Below the pieces are notes generated by a model that saw only the letters and a program-made list of their open reading frames with translations, made no database searches and was not told the origin of the DNA. Positions 6 to 61,689 of a stretch of 64,000 nt of DNA are shown piece after piece (position 1 is the stretch's first letter; every line of letters begins with the position of its first letter). Made by a program: the position numbers and the translations under genes. Source of the DNA: Octopus sinensis (taxonomy: Eukaryota); contig NC_043018.1 of NCBI RefSeq assembly GCF_006345805.1, positions 14,074,001 to 14,138,000 of the forward strand, given 5' to 3'.

Positions 6-116
6 CAAAATATTTTCGTCGCTATAAGACCGCGACCTGTTCACTGACAAAAATCTCTGCTGCACGGATTTTTGTCAGTGAACAGGTCGCGGTCTTATAG
101 CGACGAAAATATTTTG
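6..116. repeat. Perfect 50-bp inverted repeat (fold-back) with 11-nt loop; right arm continues into a dispersed repeat to ~265
   Basis: 6-55 is the exact reverse complement of 67-116; extends to 1-121 with one mismatch. Confidence 0.95.
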
Positions 117-121
117 ACAAA
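71..121 (+). ncRNA. Type I hammerhead ribozyme motif, G3-C8 core variant
   Basis: Helix I UUUGUCA(71-77)/UGACAAA(115-121); core GUGAACA(78-84) plus extra G; helix II GUCGC/GCGAC; GAAA(105-108); palindromic helix III AAUAUU; predicted cut after UUU at 114. Mirror copy on minus strand in 1-55. Confidence 0.65.
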
Positions 122-2329
122 TTAAACTTAAATGTTGAAGTGAATCGAACGGCTTTTGTGTGTTTCTTAAATGGCTTACAAACACCTTCCACGCTGCAAT
201 TGTTTTCGTTCCAGCACACGATCTCAGATCAAATCACTTGCTATGCAAGTACATCTCCGTAAATATCAGGAAATACATATTATAACGGGTAAGACACACA
301 CACACACACACACACACACATACACACATACATACACACGCACACATGTTATCTCGCTCGCTGTGGGGCGGTTATCTTCCCTGTCAGTGCATAGACATGT
401 GTTTCTCTGCAGCTGTAAATGCTTTTAGCTCTTATTTCTAGCAAGGTAGCTGCTCCTCTATACCGTCAGCCACAATTAGTGACAATCGAATTTTTCCTTT
501 TTGGTTATATATTGCGTATAGCTGCCTTCTTTATTTTATAATTTTCACATTACCATTTTGCTGAATCAGCCATTGATTCTTTTGGCAAATACTATATAGT
601 GATAATTGGCTTTCAGTAATCACCACTGATGAGCATTAATTTTAAGCAAAACTTTTTATGACAGCAACAAGTCAGAGATAAAAGATAAAGAAAACACCCC
701 GAAAGAAAAACACACGGCGAAATGGAAGAGCCTCTACAATGCCAGTGGTGCTGCTAGAAATAGTCGCTAAACCCTTCAAGAATAACCTACCATTTTAAAA
801 AGATTGTAAGAGCACATCGATAATATCGTGTTTCGTAAGTAAAGTTTGGTATGGGTAGATTAGGGGTTTAACAACAAAGCAGCATCCAGAAGGGAGAAGG
901 CTCCCCAAAAACATTGATATGAATAAATAGGGCTCTTACTGTTGACCGTCACGGCAATTTCACTATACCCTGCTTATTACTCTTGTGCGCGTGCGTGTGT
1001 GCGACTGTGCGCACGTATGTGTTCGTATGCGTGTTTGTGTTAGTGCGAGTGCGTGAGTCTGTGAGTGTGCGCTTGTGTGTGTGTGTGCAATTGTGTGTAT
1101 ACGCACAAATGCATTTTATCTTTAAATGCGTGTATCATTATATGAATACATACGTGTGTGTGTATATATATTATATATATATATATATATATATATATAT
1201 ATATATATATATATCGTGTCATAATATATTTGAAACTATATATATATACACACATGTATGTATATATATATATATAATATATATATATATACATACATAT
1301 ATATTCATAAATATATATACATACATGCATATCTATCTATCTATCTATCTATCTATCTATCTATCTATCTATCTATATATATATATATATATATATATAT
1401 ATACACTGACATACTTTAGTCTAACATGATTTATGAGTCTTCTTAATGTGAGATTAACGATGGAAAAAGAGAGGAGAGAGTAAGAGGGGGAGACTGAGGA
1501 GAGAGACAAAATAATGAGACGTTTGGAGAAGGCAAACCATGCAAAGAATAATAAAGAATCTCTGATTATATTTAATGGTTCGTCTAACAAGTTTTCCTTC
1601 CCATAAGTCTACGGAGATCGAGAAGTAAAAGGCGACATTAAAGCAACAGCGGAGGGGAAGTGTCGCATGTGGAATTATATTTTCCTGGTTAATAATTTAA
1701 TTTCAACCAATATTACTCTTGCTATTACAGACGCATATATTTGTGTTCGCGCGTGCATATATATATATGTGTGTGTGTGTGTGTGTGTGTGTGTCTGTGT
1801 GTGTATGTATGTATATATATATATATATATATATGTATATATATGTGTGCATATGCATATATAAATATATATGTGTATATATATATATATAGATATATAC
1901 ACATACAAACATACATGTATACATATTTACATGCGTACATACATACATATATCCATACATACTACATACATGTTTGTGCGTGTGTGCGTATATATGATTA
2001 TATGCATAAATGCATGAATACATGTGTGTGTATGTATGTATGTGCGTATGTATGTATGTGCGTATGTATGTATGTATATATTAGAGACGTACTAAACTGC
2101 GTCGAATGAAATATAAGCGTGTACAATTACATTAACATGTTCGTGTACACTTGACATAAAGTGACAGACTGCAAAATTGTCTCGAGAGACAAAATTTCCT
2201 CAGAGATAATCACCTAAGTTTGATTCAACGTTGCCCAATGCGTTGGTAATTAAATTTAACATACGAAAATGTGCCCATCCATCCATTCCTCTTTCCCATG
2301 CATTATTCCCGGAGGTATCGGAGGCTAGA

Positions 2330-2615
2330 CACCTCATCTTCTCCTTAGGGACTTATTTCAAGCACCCGTCATTACACTTTCTGAATGGATTGCCACGGCT
2401 GAGTCTATAAATATTATGCAACTAACCATCTGGTTCTTGGTTTACGCTTATGTCTCCTGCTGCATTCTGATCTCATGTTGGTAGTACCGGAGCTGTGGCT
2501 TCTCGTTGCGAAGAGGCAGCACATCGTCCAGGAGAGGCAACATGATCTTCGAGCGACGCATACTAAGGAGGAGCGTTGTTGCTCGAAAGGCTTTCCGGAG
2601 GAACCCGTTTCGGCC
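2330..2615 (-). mobile_element. RTE-clade LINE 3' fragment (decayed)
   Basis: Frameshifted translation TGSSGKPF/GFLRKAF...QLRYYQHEIRMQQE...KPRTRWL resembles the RTE C-terminus; related to the 16.8-17.2 kb and 42.8-43.05 kb pieces. Confidence 0.7.
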
Positions 2616-2779
2616 GCTCGCATTAGCAATCGCTCCCTTTCTACCGATCCCCAGAATTCATGACTATAGATGAGGATAAACAGGAAAACCGAATTAAAGA
2701 TAACCCGTTGGAATTCTTTTCTATAAATATATCCTCCTCTGACGATCGAATGCTAAAGCTGGTGCAAAAGTAAAATCTA

Positions 2780-58611: not shown

Positions 58612-59759
58612 GAAATAAGATTAAGATTAATGTAAAAAATAAATAACACTGAAGAAAAATAACACCAAATATATAGTGCGTGTGTTTTTATTGGCTAAAC
58701 TGGCAATATGACCATTCCGAAATATAACAATATATATATATATGTATGTATATATATTATATATATATATATATATATATATATATAAATCTATCTATCT
58801 ATCTGTCTCTGTGTATCTGTATGTCTATTGTATCTACATGCATGCATCTATATCTATATATACATACATACATATACATATACATACACACACATGCATA
58901 TTCACACATATATGTATATCCCCATAACTTTACTTAGTGTGTGTATTTGCACATACGCTCATACAGAGAGTAAAAGGGAGACAAAGAGAGAGAAGCACAG
59001 CGGGACAAAAGAATGAATACCCATTCATACATATAGAAAGAAAGAAAGAAAGAAAGAGAGAGAGAAGGGGAGAGAGGAAAGAGGGAGGGAGGGAGAAAAG
59101 GAGAGATTTCTGCGATAAATATGTAGATATTGGAATTGTTTAATATTTGCGCCGTATCTACGCTGTTACGTGCAGACAACAATGTCTTGTAGAAATACTT
59201 GAGCACGCATTTACTCTTTTACCATTCTCTTGGAGATTCCTCTTGAAAAATCTTGTTGAATCTTGTGTTACCTGTCGCTTAGAGTAAAAGCATTCCTGTA
59301 TTGGTAAAAGACGCCAATTTCTTTATCTTTGTAGCCCTTCCTCGCAGAGCAACAGAAAGAAAGAGAAAGAAGAATTAGAAAACACTTGATGTATGGTTCG
59401 GTTATCTCCCTTCCTTCCTTTCAGCTTTCCTTCCTGCCTCTTCTTTTCTCTTTTCTTTTCTTTCTTTCTTTCTTTCTTTCTTTTTGTTTCTCATTATTCT
59501 TTCTGCAGATAAATCTTGCCTTACGAAGAGGAAAATAAAAGCATGATAAATTAACGCCTTTCCGTTATGAAAAGGATAGCAAGAAGTATAACCACATAGT
59601 AACACTTAGATATATATACATGTATCATAGGTCCTTCGTCGGTTTCGACGGTTCGATCAACTGAATTCCACTTTCTTTGAATTAGTGCGTAAATACAAGT
59701 TCTCTTAACATAACGTTCTTTGATTTATCAAGTCAGCGCGATACAGTGAGAGTTACTTC

Positions 59760-60245
59760 TTCTTTCTTCTTGCCTTTAACCCCCCAACGTGGAGTATAGG
59801 CCACTTATAGTTGAATTCCATATCGCATAATTTTTCGCTTCTGTACTTATACTCTGCCATGAATCTCCCCCTTTCTCTAGTTCCTTTTGTGTTGATCTAC
59901 GCCACGAGTTCTTAGGCCTACCTCTCCTTCTATATCCAACCGGTTTCCACTTTAAAGCACTTTTCGCTACATTTGGTGTGTCTTTTCTAATTGTGCTACC
60001 AATCCACTTCCACTTTTTCTTCAATATTTGCTCCCTAATCGAAACTTGATTTGTTCTTTGCCATAGCTCTATATTGCTTATGTGTTGGGGCCATCTAATT
60101 TTAAGTATACTACACAAGCATCTGTTGATGAATGATAGTATTTGCTTATTTCACTTAACTGTTGTTCGCCATGTCTCAGCCCCATACAATAAACACCGCT
60201 TTTACGTCAGTGTTAAAAATTCTTATTTTGTTCTTTATTGAAATT
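59760..60245 (-). mobile_element. RTE-clade LINE 3' end (second subfamily)
   Basis: KNKIRIFNTDVKAV..YGAETWRTT...FINRCLCSILKIRWP...KWKWIGSTIRK...ALKWKPVGYRRRGRPKNSWRRS; GAA-rich tail. Confidence 0.88.
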
Positions 60246-61644
60246 ACACTTGCGCTCCATACTTTTTTTAACAGTGAAAATTACCGGAACAATCAATTCG
60301 GTGGGCTTCTCTACAGTTTCCGTCAGCATAATTTTATACTAATCGGGGTTATATTAAAAGACAGTTGCTCGTGATATAGTGCAGTGAGGTTGTACCCGAA
60401 ACCTCGTCGCTGTGAAGCAACTACACAACCATTCAGCTATGTTGGGTCCATGACCCAACTACTCACTAGTTAACTTAAGACACACATGAGTGAGTATTCC
60501 GAAGACATTTGAACCTTTGTTTATAGCTAGGCTCCATTTTGCATCATTTGGAGGTGGCTGGGTACTCCACAAGCACGTCTATTGTTAAAATGACTCTCAG
60601 ATAAATTCAAAAGAATCAAAGACCGAGACAAATCTGTTGACCCTCTGAATTAACTCTCTGTCTGTCCCCTGTATTACATGATACACTGGGCATATTTCCT
60701 TCCGGTTCATTTATCATATATAATACACATACCCCATTATTTTTTCAACCACCCGAGGAACTTGGGACTTAGGAAAGGAAAGCTTTATAATACGAAGCCT
60801 ATTTATAGGTGCAGGCATGGCCCCATAGTTAAGAAGCTGCCTTCCCAAACCATTGTGACCTTGAATTCTCTACTACAGCGCTGCACTTTGGACGAATGTG
60901 TACTACTATAGCTCCGGTATGACCAATGCCAGTGAGTGAAACTTGATGGACGGAAACTGAAAGAAGCCCGTATATGTGTGTGTGTGGGCGAGGGTGTGTG
61001 TGTATGTATGTATGTGGTTCAAAAATTTAAACAGAAACACAACAAAGGAACAAATGTAAAATTCACACACGAGACGGGACGTAGCTCATTCTTCGTCAGA
61101 TATCGCCCAGAAAATCCTTATATATATATGTGTGTGTGTATGGTATGTATTTATATATATATATGCATATACAAGCATACACTCATATATACATATTATA
61201 TACATCTCTCTCTCTCTCTCTCTCTCTATATATATATATATATATATATATATATATATGTGTGTGTGTATATAAATGTATATAAATATATATATATGTG
61301 TATATATATTTATCTTAATCCTAATTTCCAAATTTCCCCTTCTATCAATGTTCACAGAACACCTCAATATAACAAGGAGTGAATAAAGAAGCAACTTTCA
61401 TCAATAAATATCTTCTCCAACTAAATATGAACACATAACATAATACAGAACACTACTAACCTTTCAATTAATACCACTAACCCCCATACCTCTCTTATAC
61501 CATTCACATTACAATTCTTTATCTAACCTAATTGCACCAAATCCAGAACTTCTTACCTCCCTTACAAATAATCTTTTTTCTCGGGAACTATTAGACCTGA
61601 CATCGTCCAGTAATCGGTGTGTATTCAAAGCAATGAAAAGATGT

Positions 61645-61689
61645 ATTCAAAGCAATGATTAGTAACTTACGAAACCGGTATGCTTGAAT
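61645..61689 (+). ncRNA. Type I hammerhead motif, A3-U8 core variant
   Basis: Helix I AUUCA(A)AGCA/UGCUUGAAU; core AUGAUUA 61655-61661; helix II GUA/UAC with triloop; GAAAC 61671-61675; palindromic ACCGGU; GUA cut after 61680. Confidence 0.62.

Follow-up and report, generated by a model that had tools for sequence, protein, structure and literature searches.

Hammerhead-type motifs in the window

The window analyzed here is a 64,000-nt stretch of the Octopus sinensis genome (RefSeq assembly GCF_006345805.1, contig NC_043018.1, forward-strand positions 14,074,001 to 14,138,000; coordinates below count from its first letter). It is AT-rich (~35% G+C), with dense microsatellites and transposon debris, and it carries a set of motifs resembling the type-I hammerhead ribozyme, in which positions C3 and G8 form an established core pair and double mutants at the two positions rescue activity. 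We found nine instances, named here by the position of the core: 78, 18987, 61655, an inverted twin at 1-54 (minus), 39896 (minus), 51291 (minus), 5750 (plus), 44675 (plus), and 44582 (minus). The initial annotation had counted about 15 motifs with correct pairing, and three of the nine have irregular helices. Three instances carry swapped cores at the coordinates first proposed, as confirmed both by direct reading and by descriptor search: GTGAACA at 78-84 (G3:C8), TTGACAA at 18987-18993 (U3:A8), and ATGATTA at 61655-61661 (A3:U8). Since positions 3 and 8 are both changed and still complementary, a CUGANGA pattern search would indeed miss these cores. All three show the minimal hammerhead-type three-way junction with a palindromic helix III.

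In the U3:A8 motif (18981..19025, plus strand; core UUGACAA at 18987-18993), helix I comprises 6 bp (18981-18986 with 19020-19025), and helix II consists of GAGG/CCUC around the loop CAAAUA (18994-19007), followed by GAA (19008-19010). Helix III is ACUGCAGU (19011-19018), residue 17 is the C at 19019, and cleavage is predicted between 19019 and 19020. When a 101-nt local segment was searched with relaxed thresholds, the Rfam model RF00163 (Hammerhead_1) covered 18981-19025 over its full length (model positions 1-45 of 45) with 21.7 bits and an E-value of 0.002. The motif has the loop II of the Rfam consensus unaltered and a fully covaried helix II, and its core departs only at positions 3 and 8; this change of both C3 and G8 puts it below the Rfam threshold. 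Helix I continues into a long imperfect hairpin (18939..19070, plus strand, ~130 nt) with the ribozyme junction at its tip. The minimum free energy of this hairpin is -54.5 kcal/mol (z = -6.35), and none of 200 shuffles folded as well. Cofolding with ViennaRNA gave -34.1 kcal/mol for the dimer against 2 x -12.2 kcal/mol for the monomers, with helix III formed between the two molecules.

The A3:U8 motif (61645..61689, plus strand; core AUGAUUA) pairs 61645-61654 with 61681-61689 in helix I (5 + 4 bp, one A bulging out). Helix II, GUA/UAC, encloses the loop ACU (61662-61670) and is followed by GAA (61671-61673), helix III is ACCGGU (61674-61679), and residue 17 is the A at 61680, so that cleavage is predicted between 61680 and 61681. 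In the ViennaRNA cofold, the dimer reached -18.1 kcal/mol against 2 x -4.9 kcal/mol for the monomers, again with an intermolecular helix III. A 17-nt sequence, TGTATTCAAAGCAATGA, is tandemly duplicated with a 22-nt period at 61620..61658 (plus strand). The duplication spans the 5' strand of helix I and A3-U4-G5-A6, with the extra copy just upstream of the motif, and may represent either a tandem copy that has been truncated or the "tail" of a Penelope-like element (PLE).

The G3:C8 motif (71..121, plus strand; core GUGAACA) has a helix I of 71-77 with 115-121 and a helix II of 86-90 with 100-104 that includes G10.1-C11.1 and is followed by GAA (105-107). Helix III is AAUAUU (108-113), U17 is at 114, and cleavage is predicted between 114 and 115. 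An unpaired G at 85 lies between A9 and position 10.1; an unpaired base at this place is a listed hallmark of PLE minimal hammerheads (PMC4209133). The motif occupies one arm of a palindrome at 1-121 that is cut off by the window edge. The other arm holds the inverted twin (1..54, minus strand), which is a recent copy; over its 54 bases it agrees with the plus-strand arm at 53, and the sole difference breaks helix I at 1.3. Cofolding of motif 78 did not predict an intermolecular helix III from its all-A/U palindrome.

Among the canonical C3:G8 motifs, the hammerhead at 39858..39900 (minus strand, core at 39896) reads CCAC CUGACGA AUGUC-AUUGAA-GACAU GAA ACGAUUGU A GUGG. A second copy of this family, with an intact core at 51291, lies at 51253..51295 (minus strand). 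The units of the family are ~240 nt long, with the hammerhead at the 5' end and (TA)n at the far end. Between the two copies, both bases of the pair 10.1:11.1 differ (A-U to U-A), as do N7 and loop II, with the core untouched. An inverted partner at 51313..51541 (plus strand), 5'-truncated inside the hammerhead and beginning near G12, builds the palindrome at 51027-51558. These two hammerheads, annotated at 39858 and 51253, were upheld, and the annotated sites at 5739 and 44671 proved to have canonical cores with irregular or weak helices. The former, motif 5750 (5739..5818, plus strand), has a CUGAUGA core, helix III ACCGGU, C17, and a helix I of 7 + 3 bp with a bulged A; its helix II of ~40 nt is irregular, each strand holding an additional A, and its activity is doubtful because the blind descriptor failed to match it. 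The latter belongs to a head-to-head hammerhead-like pair on both strands (44490..44767; plus core 44675-44681, minus core 44582-44576) inside the palindrome at 44400-44860. Both members of the pair have CUGAUGA cores, a helix II of ~70 nt, and a weak helix I, and the plus-strand copy has GAAACGAUUGUA in common with the 39896/51291 family. Dimers of 18987, 61655, 39896, 51291, and 5750 were predicted to be 8-10 kcal/mol more stable than two monomers, with intermolecular helix III in the cofolds.

In motifs 5750 and 61655 alike, helix III reads ACCGGU and one A bulges out of helix I on its 5' strand (5739-5749/5809-5818 and 61645-61654/61681-61689), which hints that a canonical motif and a swapped one are related. 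The fifth site that had been annotated as canonical, 14990, was rejected; it has no convincing helix II or III and is of the chance look-alike kind.

Complementarity at positions 3 and 8

The search descriptor left positions 3 and 8 free in an N-UGA-NN-A core and asked next for a helix II (3 bp or more, within 30 nt), then GAAA, a helix III that is a palindrome of 6-10 nt, any residue but G at 17, and 4 bp or more in helix I. Applied to the window, it returned exactly three matches, 78, 18987, and 61655, whereas dinucleotide-preserving shuffles gave a mean of 0.017-0.033 matches per window. Real genomes are richer in hairpins than shuffles, and therefore 17 descriptors with scrambled core letters were also run on the real window as decoys; they gave no palindromic match, against three for the true core. 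When a non-palindromic helix III was allowed, the two canonical motifs 39896 and 51291 (both minus) were added, giving five matches observed against 0.27 expected. Allowing a helix III of 2 or 4 nt added nothing credible. A loose descriptor returned dozens of meaningless matches in the window, many of them in microsatellites, and for this reason the stricter descriptors, shuffles, and decoys were used. The motifs are not a random product of the composition of the window.

Positions 3 and 8 form a Watson-Crick pair in all five matches of the descriptor that leaves both free, representing four independent elements. Such pairing was found in 3 of 16 and 15 of 48 shuffle matches for the two non-palindromic descriptors, in none of the 10 shuffle matches of three palindromic descriptors, and in one of four decoy-core matches. 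In a set of eight distinct core rows, all pairs are complementary (five C-G and one each of A-U, G-C, and U-A), a result reached by 1 of 500 shuffles. This formal count uses the aligned core segment only, as MAFFT misplaced the full motifs, and the eight-row set is biased to C-G, three of its five C-G rows having come from a CTGANGA search; the unbiased set is that of the five descriptor matches.

The remaining core features agree with a type-I hammerhead. The order helix I (5'), core, helix II, GAA, helix III, N17, helix I (3') is present in 78, 18987, 61655, 39896 (minus), and 51291 (minus), and the three swapped and two tight canonical motifs all have U4, G5, A6, A9, G12, A13, A14, A15.1-U16.1, and a non-G residue 17. 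The letters C3 and G8 that define the type are missing at 78, 18987, and 61655, with the pairing kept. All three swapped motifs have G10.1-C11.1, although the descriptor does not demand it. In none of the three could residue 17 form a Watson-Crick pair with residue 3 (G3/U17, U3/C17, and A3/A17), which fits the published rationale for the rule that residue 17 is not G where residue 3 is C (PMC3884650); with three motifs, this is not significant.

Element context and known hammerheads

Several features of the motifs recall PLE insertions. Helix III is a short palindrome, as in minimal hammerheads (AAUAUU, ACUGCAGU, and ACCGGU), and head-to-head inverted copies with the junction at, inside, or beside a hammerhead were found at 1-121, 44400-44860, and 51027-51558. 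The inverted 5'-truncated copies and the adjacency to microsatellites, seen as the (TA)n ends of the canonical units, are also in keeping with PLEs, among whose traits are dual opposite-strand minimal hammerheads, inverted 5'-truncated partners, and a bias toward insertion in microsatellites (PMC4209133, PMC8557442); an inverted 5'-truncated copy beside the repeat is typical of PLE insertions (PMC8557442). The flanking frame with reverse transcriptase and GIY-YIG endonuclease that marks PLE terminal repeats was not found in the window, and the sole reverse transcriptase in the window resembles that of a long interspersed nuclear element (LINE). The hammerhead units would therefore be solitary or non-autonomous. 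For none of the swapped motifs does the window hold a tandem sense partner for a cis dimer, motif 78 having only its inverted twin, and dimers would thus need two transcripts. Retrozymes of the kind that has no long terminal repeats (non-LTR) consist of tandem monomers of ~150-400 nt, each with a type-I hammerhead, and no such array is present in the window. The only satellite in the window, at 52335-53268, consists of 7.0 copies of a 133-bp unit (98% identity) that contains no hammerhead.

These features suggest how the motifs might act. Several short non-autonomous repeat units in the window, of the PLE-terminal-repeat or animal-retrozyme kind and putatively of PLE parentage, would each carry a type-I hammerhead with helix III cut down to a palindrome of 6-8 nt. 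Two copies, on the same or on separate transcripts, would pair via this palindrome and in doing so complete two active sites. With the 2'-OH of residue 17 activated by G12 and the leaving group assisted by residue 8 through its ribose, the strand would break just after residue 17 and end in a 2',3'-cyclic phosphate and a 5'-OH, and transcripts of the repeats would be processed in this way. In three units, the tertiary pair positioning residue 8 would be G3:C8, U3:A8, or A3:U8 and not C3:G8. What catalysis draws on is residue 8's ribose and the pair's geometry, not the identity of the bases, and a swapped pair is therefore expected to keep some activity.

Other repeats were also observed in the window. 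A dispersed repeat of ~125-165 bp with the look of a short interspersed nuclear element (SINE) is present in at least nine copies (76-97% identity), usually abutting microsatellites. Copies are found on the minus strand at 25158-25322, 17722-17846, 31218-31376, 19752-19847, and 49299-49475, and with no strand assigned at 50900-51022, 13322-13444, 55500-55628, and 43745-43892; ARAGORN detected no tRNA-like head anywhere in the window. At 27229-29009 (minus strand), two adjoining LINE-type reverse transcriptase frames were found (RVT_1, 1.3e-13; weak zf-RVT). This LINE has one near relative, 95% identical, on a 2-kb ENA contig, and the rest, at 55-65% identity, are from cnidarians, crustaceans including shrimps, and fish, which hints at a lineage that is widely shared or horizontally spread. 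By eye, 2859-3152 (minus) and 20435-20945 (plus) resemble C-terminal and N-terminal parts of a mariner-type transposase, respectively; neither fragment matched Pfam at E ≤ 0.1. Hundreds of relaxed Rfam matches in E-value mode to "microRNAs" (mir-297, mir-466, and MIR6224 among others) were rejected as artefacts of microsatellites or (CT)n/(GA)n palindromes, far below gathering thresholds; the stretches concerned include 38770-38921, 30911-31010, 11076-11146, and many others.

Engineered hammerheads with C3G/G8C and other double mutations at 3:8 were reportedly made by Martick & Scott in 2006 and by Przybilski & Hammann in 2007. The window motifs resemble them in the exchange of both sides of the core pair, which in the engineered double mutants regains part of the activity lost in single mutants; unlike these laboratory constructs, the window motifs are genomic sequences of putative activity. 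In the hammerhead of the Poseidon PLE Poseidon_Ac, the C3G/G8C double mutant partly restores cleavage (PMC11167929). The swapped pairs are less novel than the initial annotation had implied, natural U3-A8 having been published in 2011 and again in 2014. Perreault et al. reported U3-A8 covariation in bacteria and phages (PMC3088659); these hammerheads are like the window motifs in their natural 3:8 covariation, and differ in type and host and in having only U-A. Cervera & De la Pena then described U3-A8 in PLE minimal hammerheads, with ~1,300 matches beside ~2,000 canonical ones in Schistosoma mansoni (PMC4209133). Natural G3-C8 or A3-U8 is absent from the main text of that 2014 paper and was found in no report in the literature searched, the coverage of which was incomplete, so that an earlier report is possible. 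As for other cephalopods, 235 Hammerhead_1 matches are reported from the giant squid genome (PMC6962438).

The closest likenesses are to the PLE minimal hammerheads. These are likewise of type I, have a palindromic helix III that implies action as dimers, and keep G10.1-C11.1, and the variant in Cercyon elements of S. mansoni has the same U3:A8 swap as motif 18987 (PMC4209133). PLE minimal hammerheads also resemble motif 78 in the unpaired base between 9 and 10.1, and, like the window motifs, they are mostly solitary or occur as head-to-head copies 100-700 bp apart (PMC4209133). By contrast, the window motifs have no nearby PLE frame and their helix II is 3-5 bp long as against 6-8 bp, and their helix III palindromes are 6-8 nt where the PLE loci sampled here have ACGU. 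Motif 18987 further resembles the canonical metazoan type-I hammerhead of non-LTR retrozymes and satellite transcripts (RF00163; PMC7229834) in its 6-bp helix I, 4-bp helix II, loop CAAAUA, and short palindromic helix III, but it scores below threshold, has no tandem array, and has a helix I that runs into the ~130-nt hairpin.

To sample more widely, the Poseidon_Ac protein (PMC11167929 supplement) was compared with a protein collection, and 120 matches were listed. They include PLE loci of insects, a spider, a lamprey, a goby, and a further eukaryote; no cephalopod or mollusc PLE is among the 120 matches listed, and the same protein had no match in viral contigs. Seven PLE loci were examined: those of a beetle, the spider, the lamprey, and the goby, and three eukaryote loci of one Joint Genome Institute sample. 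The descriptor with positions 3 and 8 free recovered 11 canonical minimal hammerheads just downstream of the PLE frames at five of the seven loci, a positive control that validates it. In all 11, helix III reads ACGU, A9 is followed by an unpaired base, and G10.1-C11.1 is present. The Tenebrio and goby PLE loci had no hammerhead; in Tenebrio molitor (OZ014538.1, Poseidon-like PLE frame at ~7001-8947), none was found within 7 kb on either side with the canonical or the N3/N8-free descriptor. The metagenome contig Ga0123355_10057374 carries two near-identical canonical minimal hammerheads at ~1992 and 6236 (minus strand, 4.2 kb apart), matched by the N3/N8-free descriptor as a further positive control. 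With a GIY-YIG-like fragment between them, this pair is likely a PLE.

Origin and meaning of the swapped cores

As judged from sequence, the motifs are probably minimal type-I hammerheads of the PLE or retrozyme kind, likely dependent on dimers, with swaps that derive from master copies. The swapped state was most likely inherited from variant master copies and did not arise by decay of canonical ones. Decay is unlikely because both positions must turn complementary with ~35 other constrained positions left intact. Moreover, three swaps beside at most six canonical copies would be very unlikely by decay, which suggests that the source copies were probably already swapped. From C3:G8, both G3:C8 and A3:U8 are two transversions away; U3:A8 takes two transitions, of which one falls at a CpG (C7-G8). 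The observation in the initial annotation is largely right and statistically sound, and its interpretation, in which families with swapped cores evolved under selection for self-cleavage, is plausible and only partly supported. What the sequence shows is the presence of the motifs beyond chance, with complementary positions 3 and 8 and a thermodynamic preference for the dimer state; cleavage, selection on the families, and descent from PLEs are inferred.

Several results weigh against this reading. Rfam at gathering thresholds found no hammerhead, and no match at all, across the whole window, and no motif reached the RF00163 gathering score of 34 bits (21.7 bits for 18987, 10.8 for 39896, and no match for 78 and 61655). 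Relaxed local searches gave no match for motif 61655 and no Hammerhead match for motif 78, where long-hairpin matches dominate the stretch; Rfam at relaxed thresholds thus sees one swapped motif and misses the other two. The score of only 10.8 bits for the canonical 39896 indicates that the Rfam threshold is insensitive for this minimal type. Motif 61655 is the weakest of the three swapped motifs, since its helix II has 3 bp only and Rfam is blind to it. In motif 78, helix III is all A/U and the 54-bp hairpin would outcompete the motif in its genomic setting. Self-BLAST detected no further copy of any swapped motif in the window, except the inverted twin of motif 78, and the antisense reading frame over 18987, searched as a protein for paralogous repeat copies, returned no relatives. 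No PLE reading frame was found in the window by tblastn with the Poseidon_Ac protein, which returned nothing at E ≤ 10. Most published minimal hammerheads are likewise solitary (PMC4209133), so that the missing frame lowers the proof of membership in PLEs and not the resemblance to them. PLE hammerheads also cleave poorly in vitro (PMC4209133) and are dispensable for insertion in vitro (PMC11167929). All 11 PLE-linked hammerheads are C3:G8; swapped cores are therefore not the rule in those lineages, although the comparison is biased because the window was picked for its oddity. Finally, a metagenome scan for canonical-type hammerheads with a position 8 other than G gave 52 matches, three of them real hammerheads, and all three keep C3 and are uncompensated, two with further damage.

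One alternative is that the swapped motifs are dead relics, descended from hammerhead repeats, in elements that have lost ribozyme activity or the need for it, so that the changed cores are neutral and the 3:8 complementarity is luck. We regard this as somewhat unlikely. All three swapped motifs are singletons in the window, the probability of chance complementarity for three motifs (~0.02-0.03) is small but not negligible, and only two transitions, one at a CpG, lead to U3:A8. PLE insertion in vitro can also do without hammerhead activity, and the Naiad PLEs flourish although they have no canonical hammerheads (PMC11167929, PMC8557442). Neutral decay should, however, also strike the other ~35 constrained positions, and all three motifs are otherwise intact; in the decayed hammerheads of the metagenomes, single mutations stand uncompensated beside other damage, and G3:C8 and A3:U8 each demand two transversions.

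Two other explanations carry less weight. That the motifs are chance look-alikes, AT-rich and hairpin-rich repeat DNA fitting a permissive descriptor, is hardly credible. Loose descriptors do yield dozens of meaningless matches in the window, 14990 being of that kind, and motif 78 lies within a long perfect palindrome that scores in Rfam as many microRNA-like hairpins. But the strict descriptor gave three matches against 0.02-0.03 in shuffles and none with the 17 decoy cores on the real sequence, motif 18987 aligns over the full length of the Rfam model with an identical loop II, and G10.1-C11.1 is found in all three motifs without being required. It is likewise improbable, though less so, that the swapped motifs are functional and non-cleaving, with the hammerhead shape kept as a junction recognized by a protein or a reverse transcriptase. 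In the absence of its protein, the Poseidon hammerhead was not seen to cleave, and mutants of it left insertion unchanged (PMC11167929); for motif 18987, the long underlying stem might serve as a hairpin for recognition. Yet the exact catalytic nucleotides are kept (U4, G5, A6, A9, G12, A13, A14, A15.1, U16.1, and non-G17), which is hard to explain without catalysis.

Inheritance from variant master copies remains the preferred reading of the three swapped motifs. With U3-A8 already documented, the sequences suggest that G3:C8 and A3:U8 may be new natural variants, each present here in one copy. It is doubtful that this genome, and possibly those of further invertebrates, holds whole families that are fixed for G3:C8 and A3:U8 and still cleave. 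The gain is incremental because U3-A8 was known before: the view of the hammerhead mechanism is unchanged, and two further pair types, each seen once, are a modest addition to a phenomenon already known. If such families do exist, 3:8 would be a freely covarying base pair in nature. A sizeable share of retroelement hammerheads would be hidden from CUGANGA descriptors and Rfam models, and this share could include some lineages reported to be without canonical hammerheads. It would also serve as a warning that descriptors and covariance models with fixed letters at C3 and G8 undercount animal hammerheads. Were G3:C8 and A3:U8 active and fixed in their families, all four Watson-Crick pairs would be in use at the one tertiary pair of the hammerhead active site, and evolution would thereby directly confirm the structural model of 2006.

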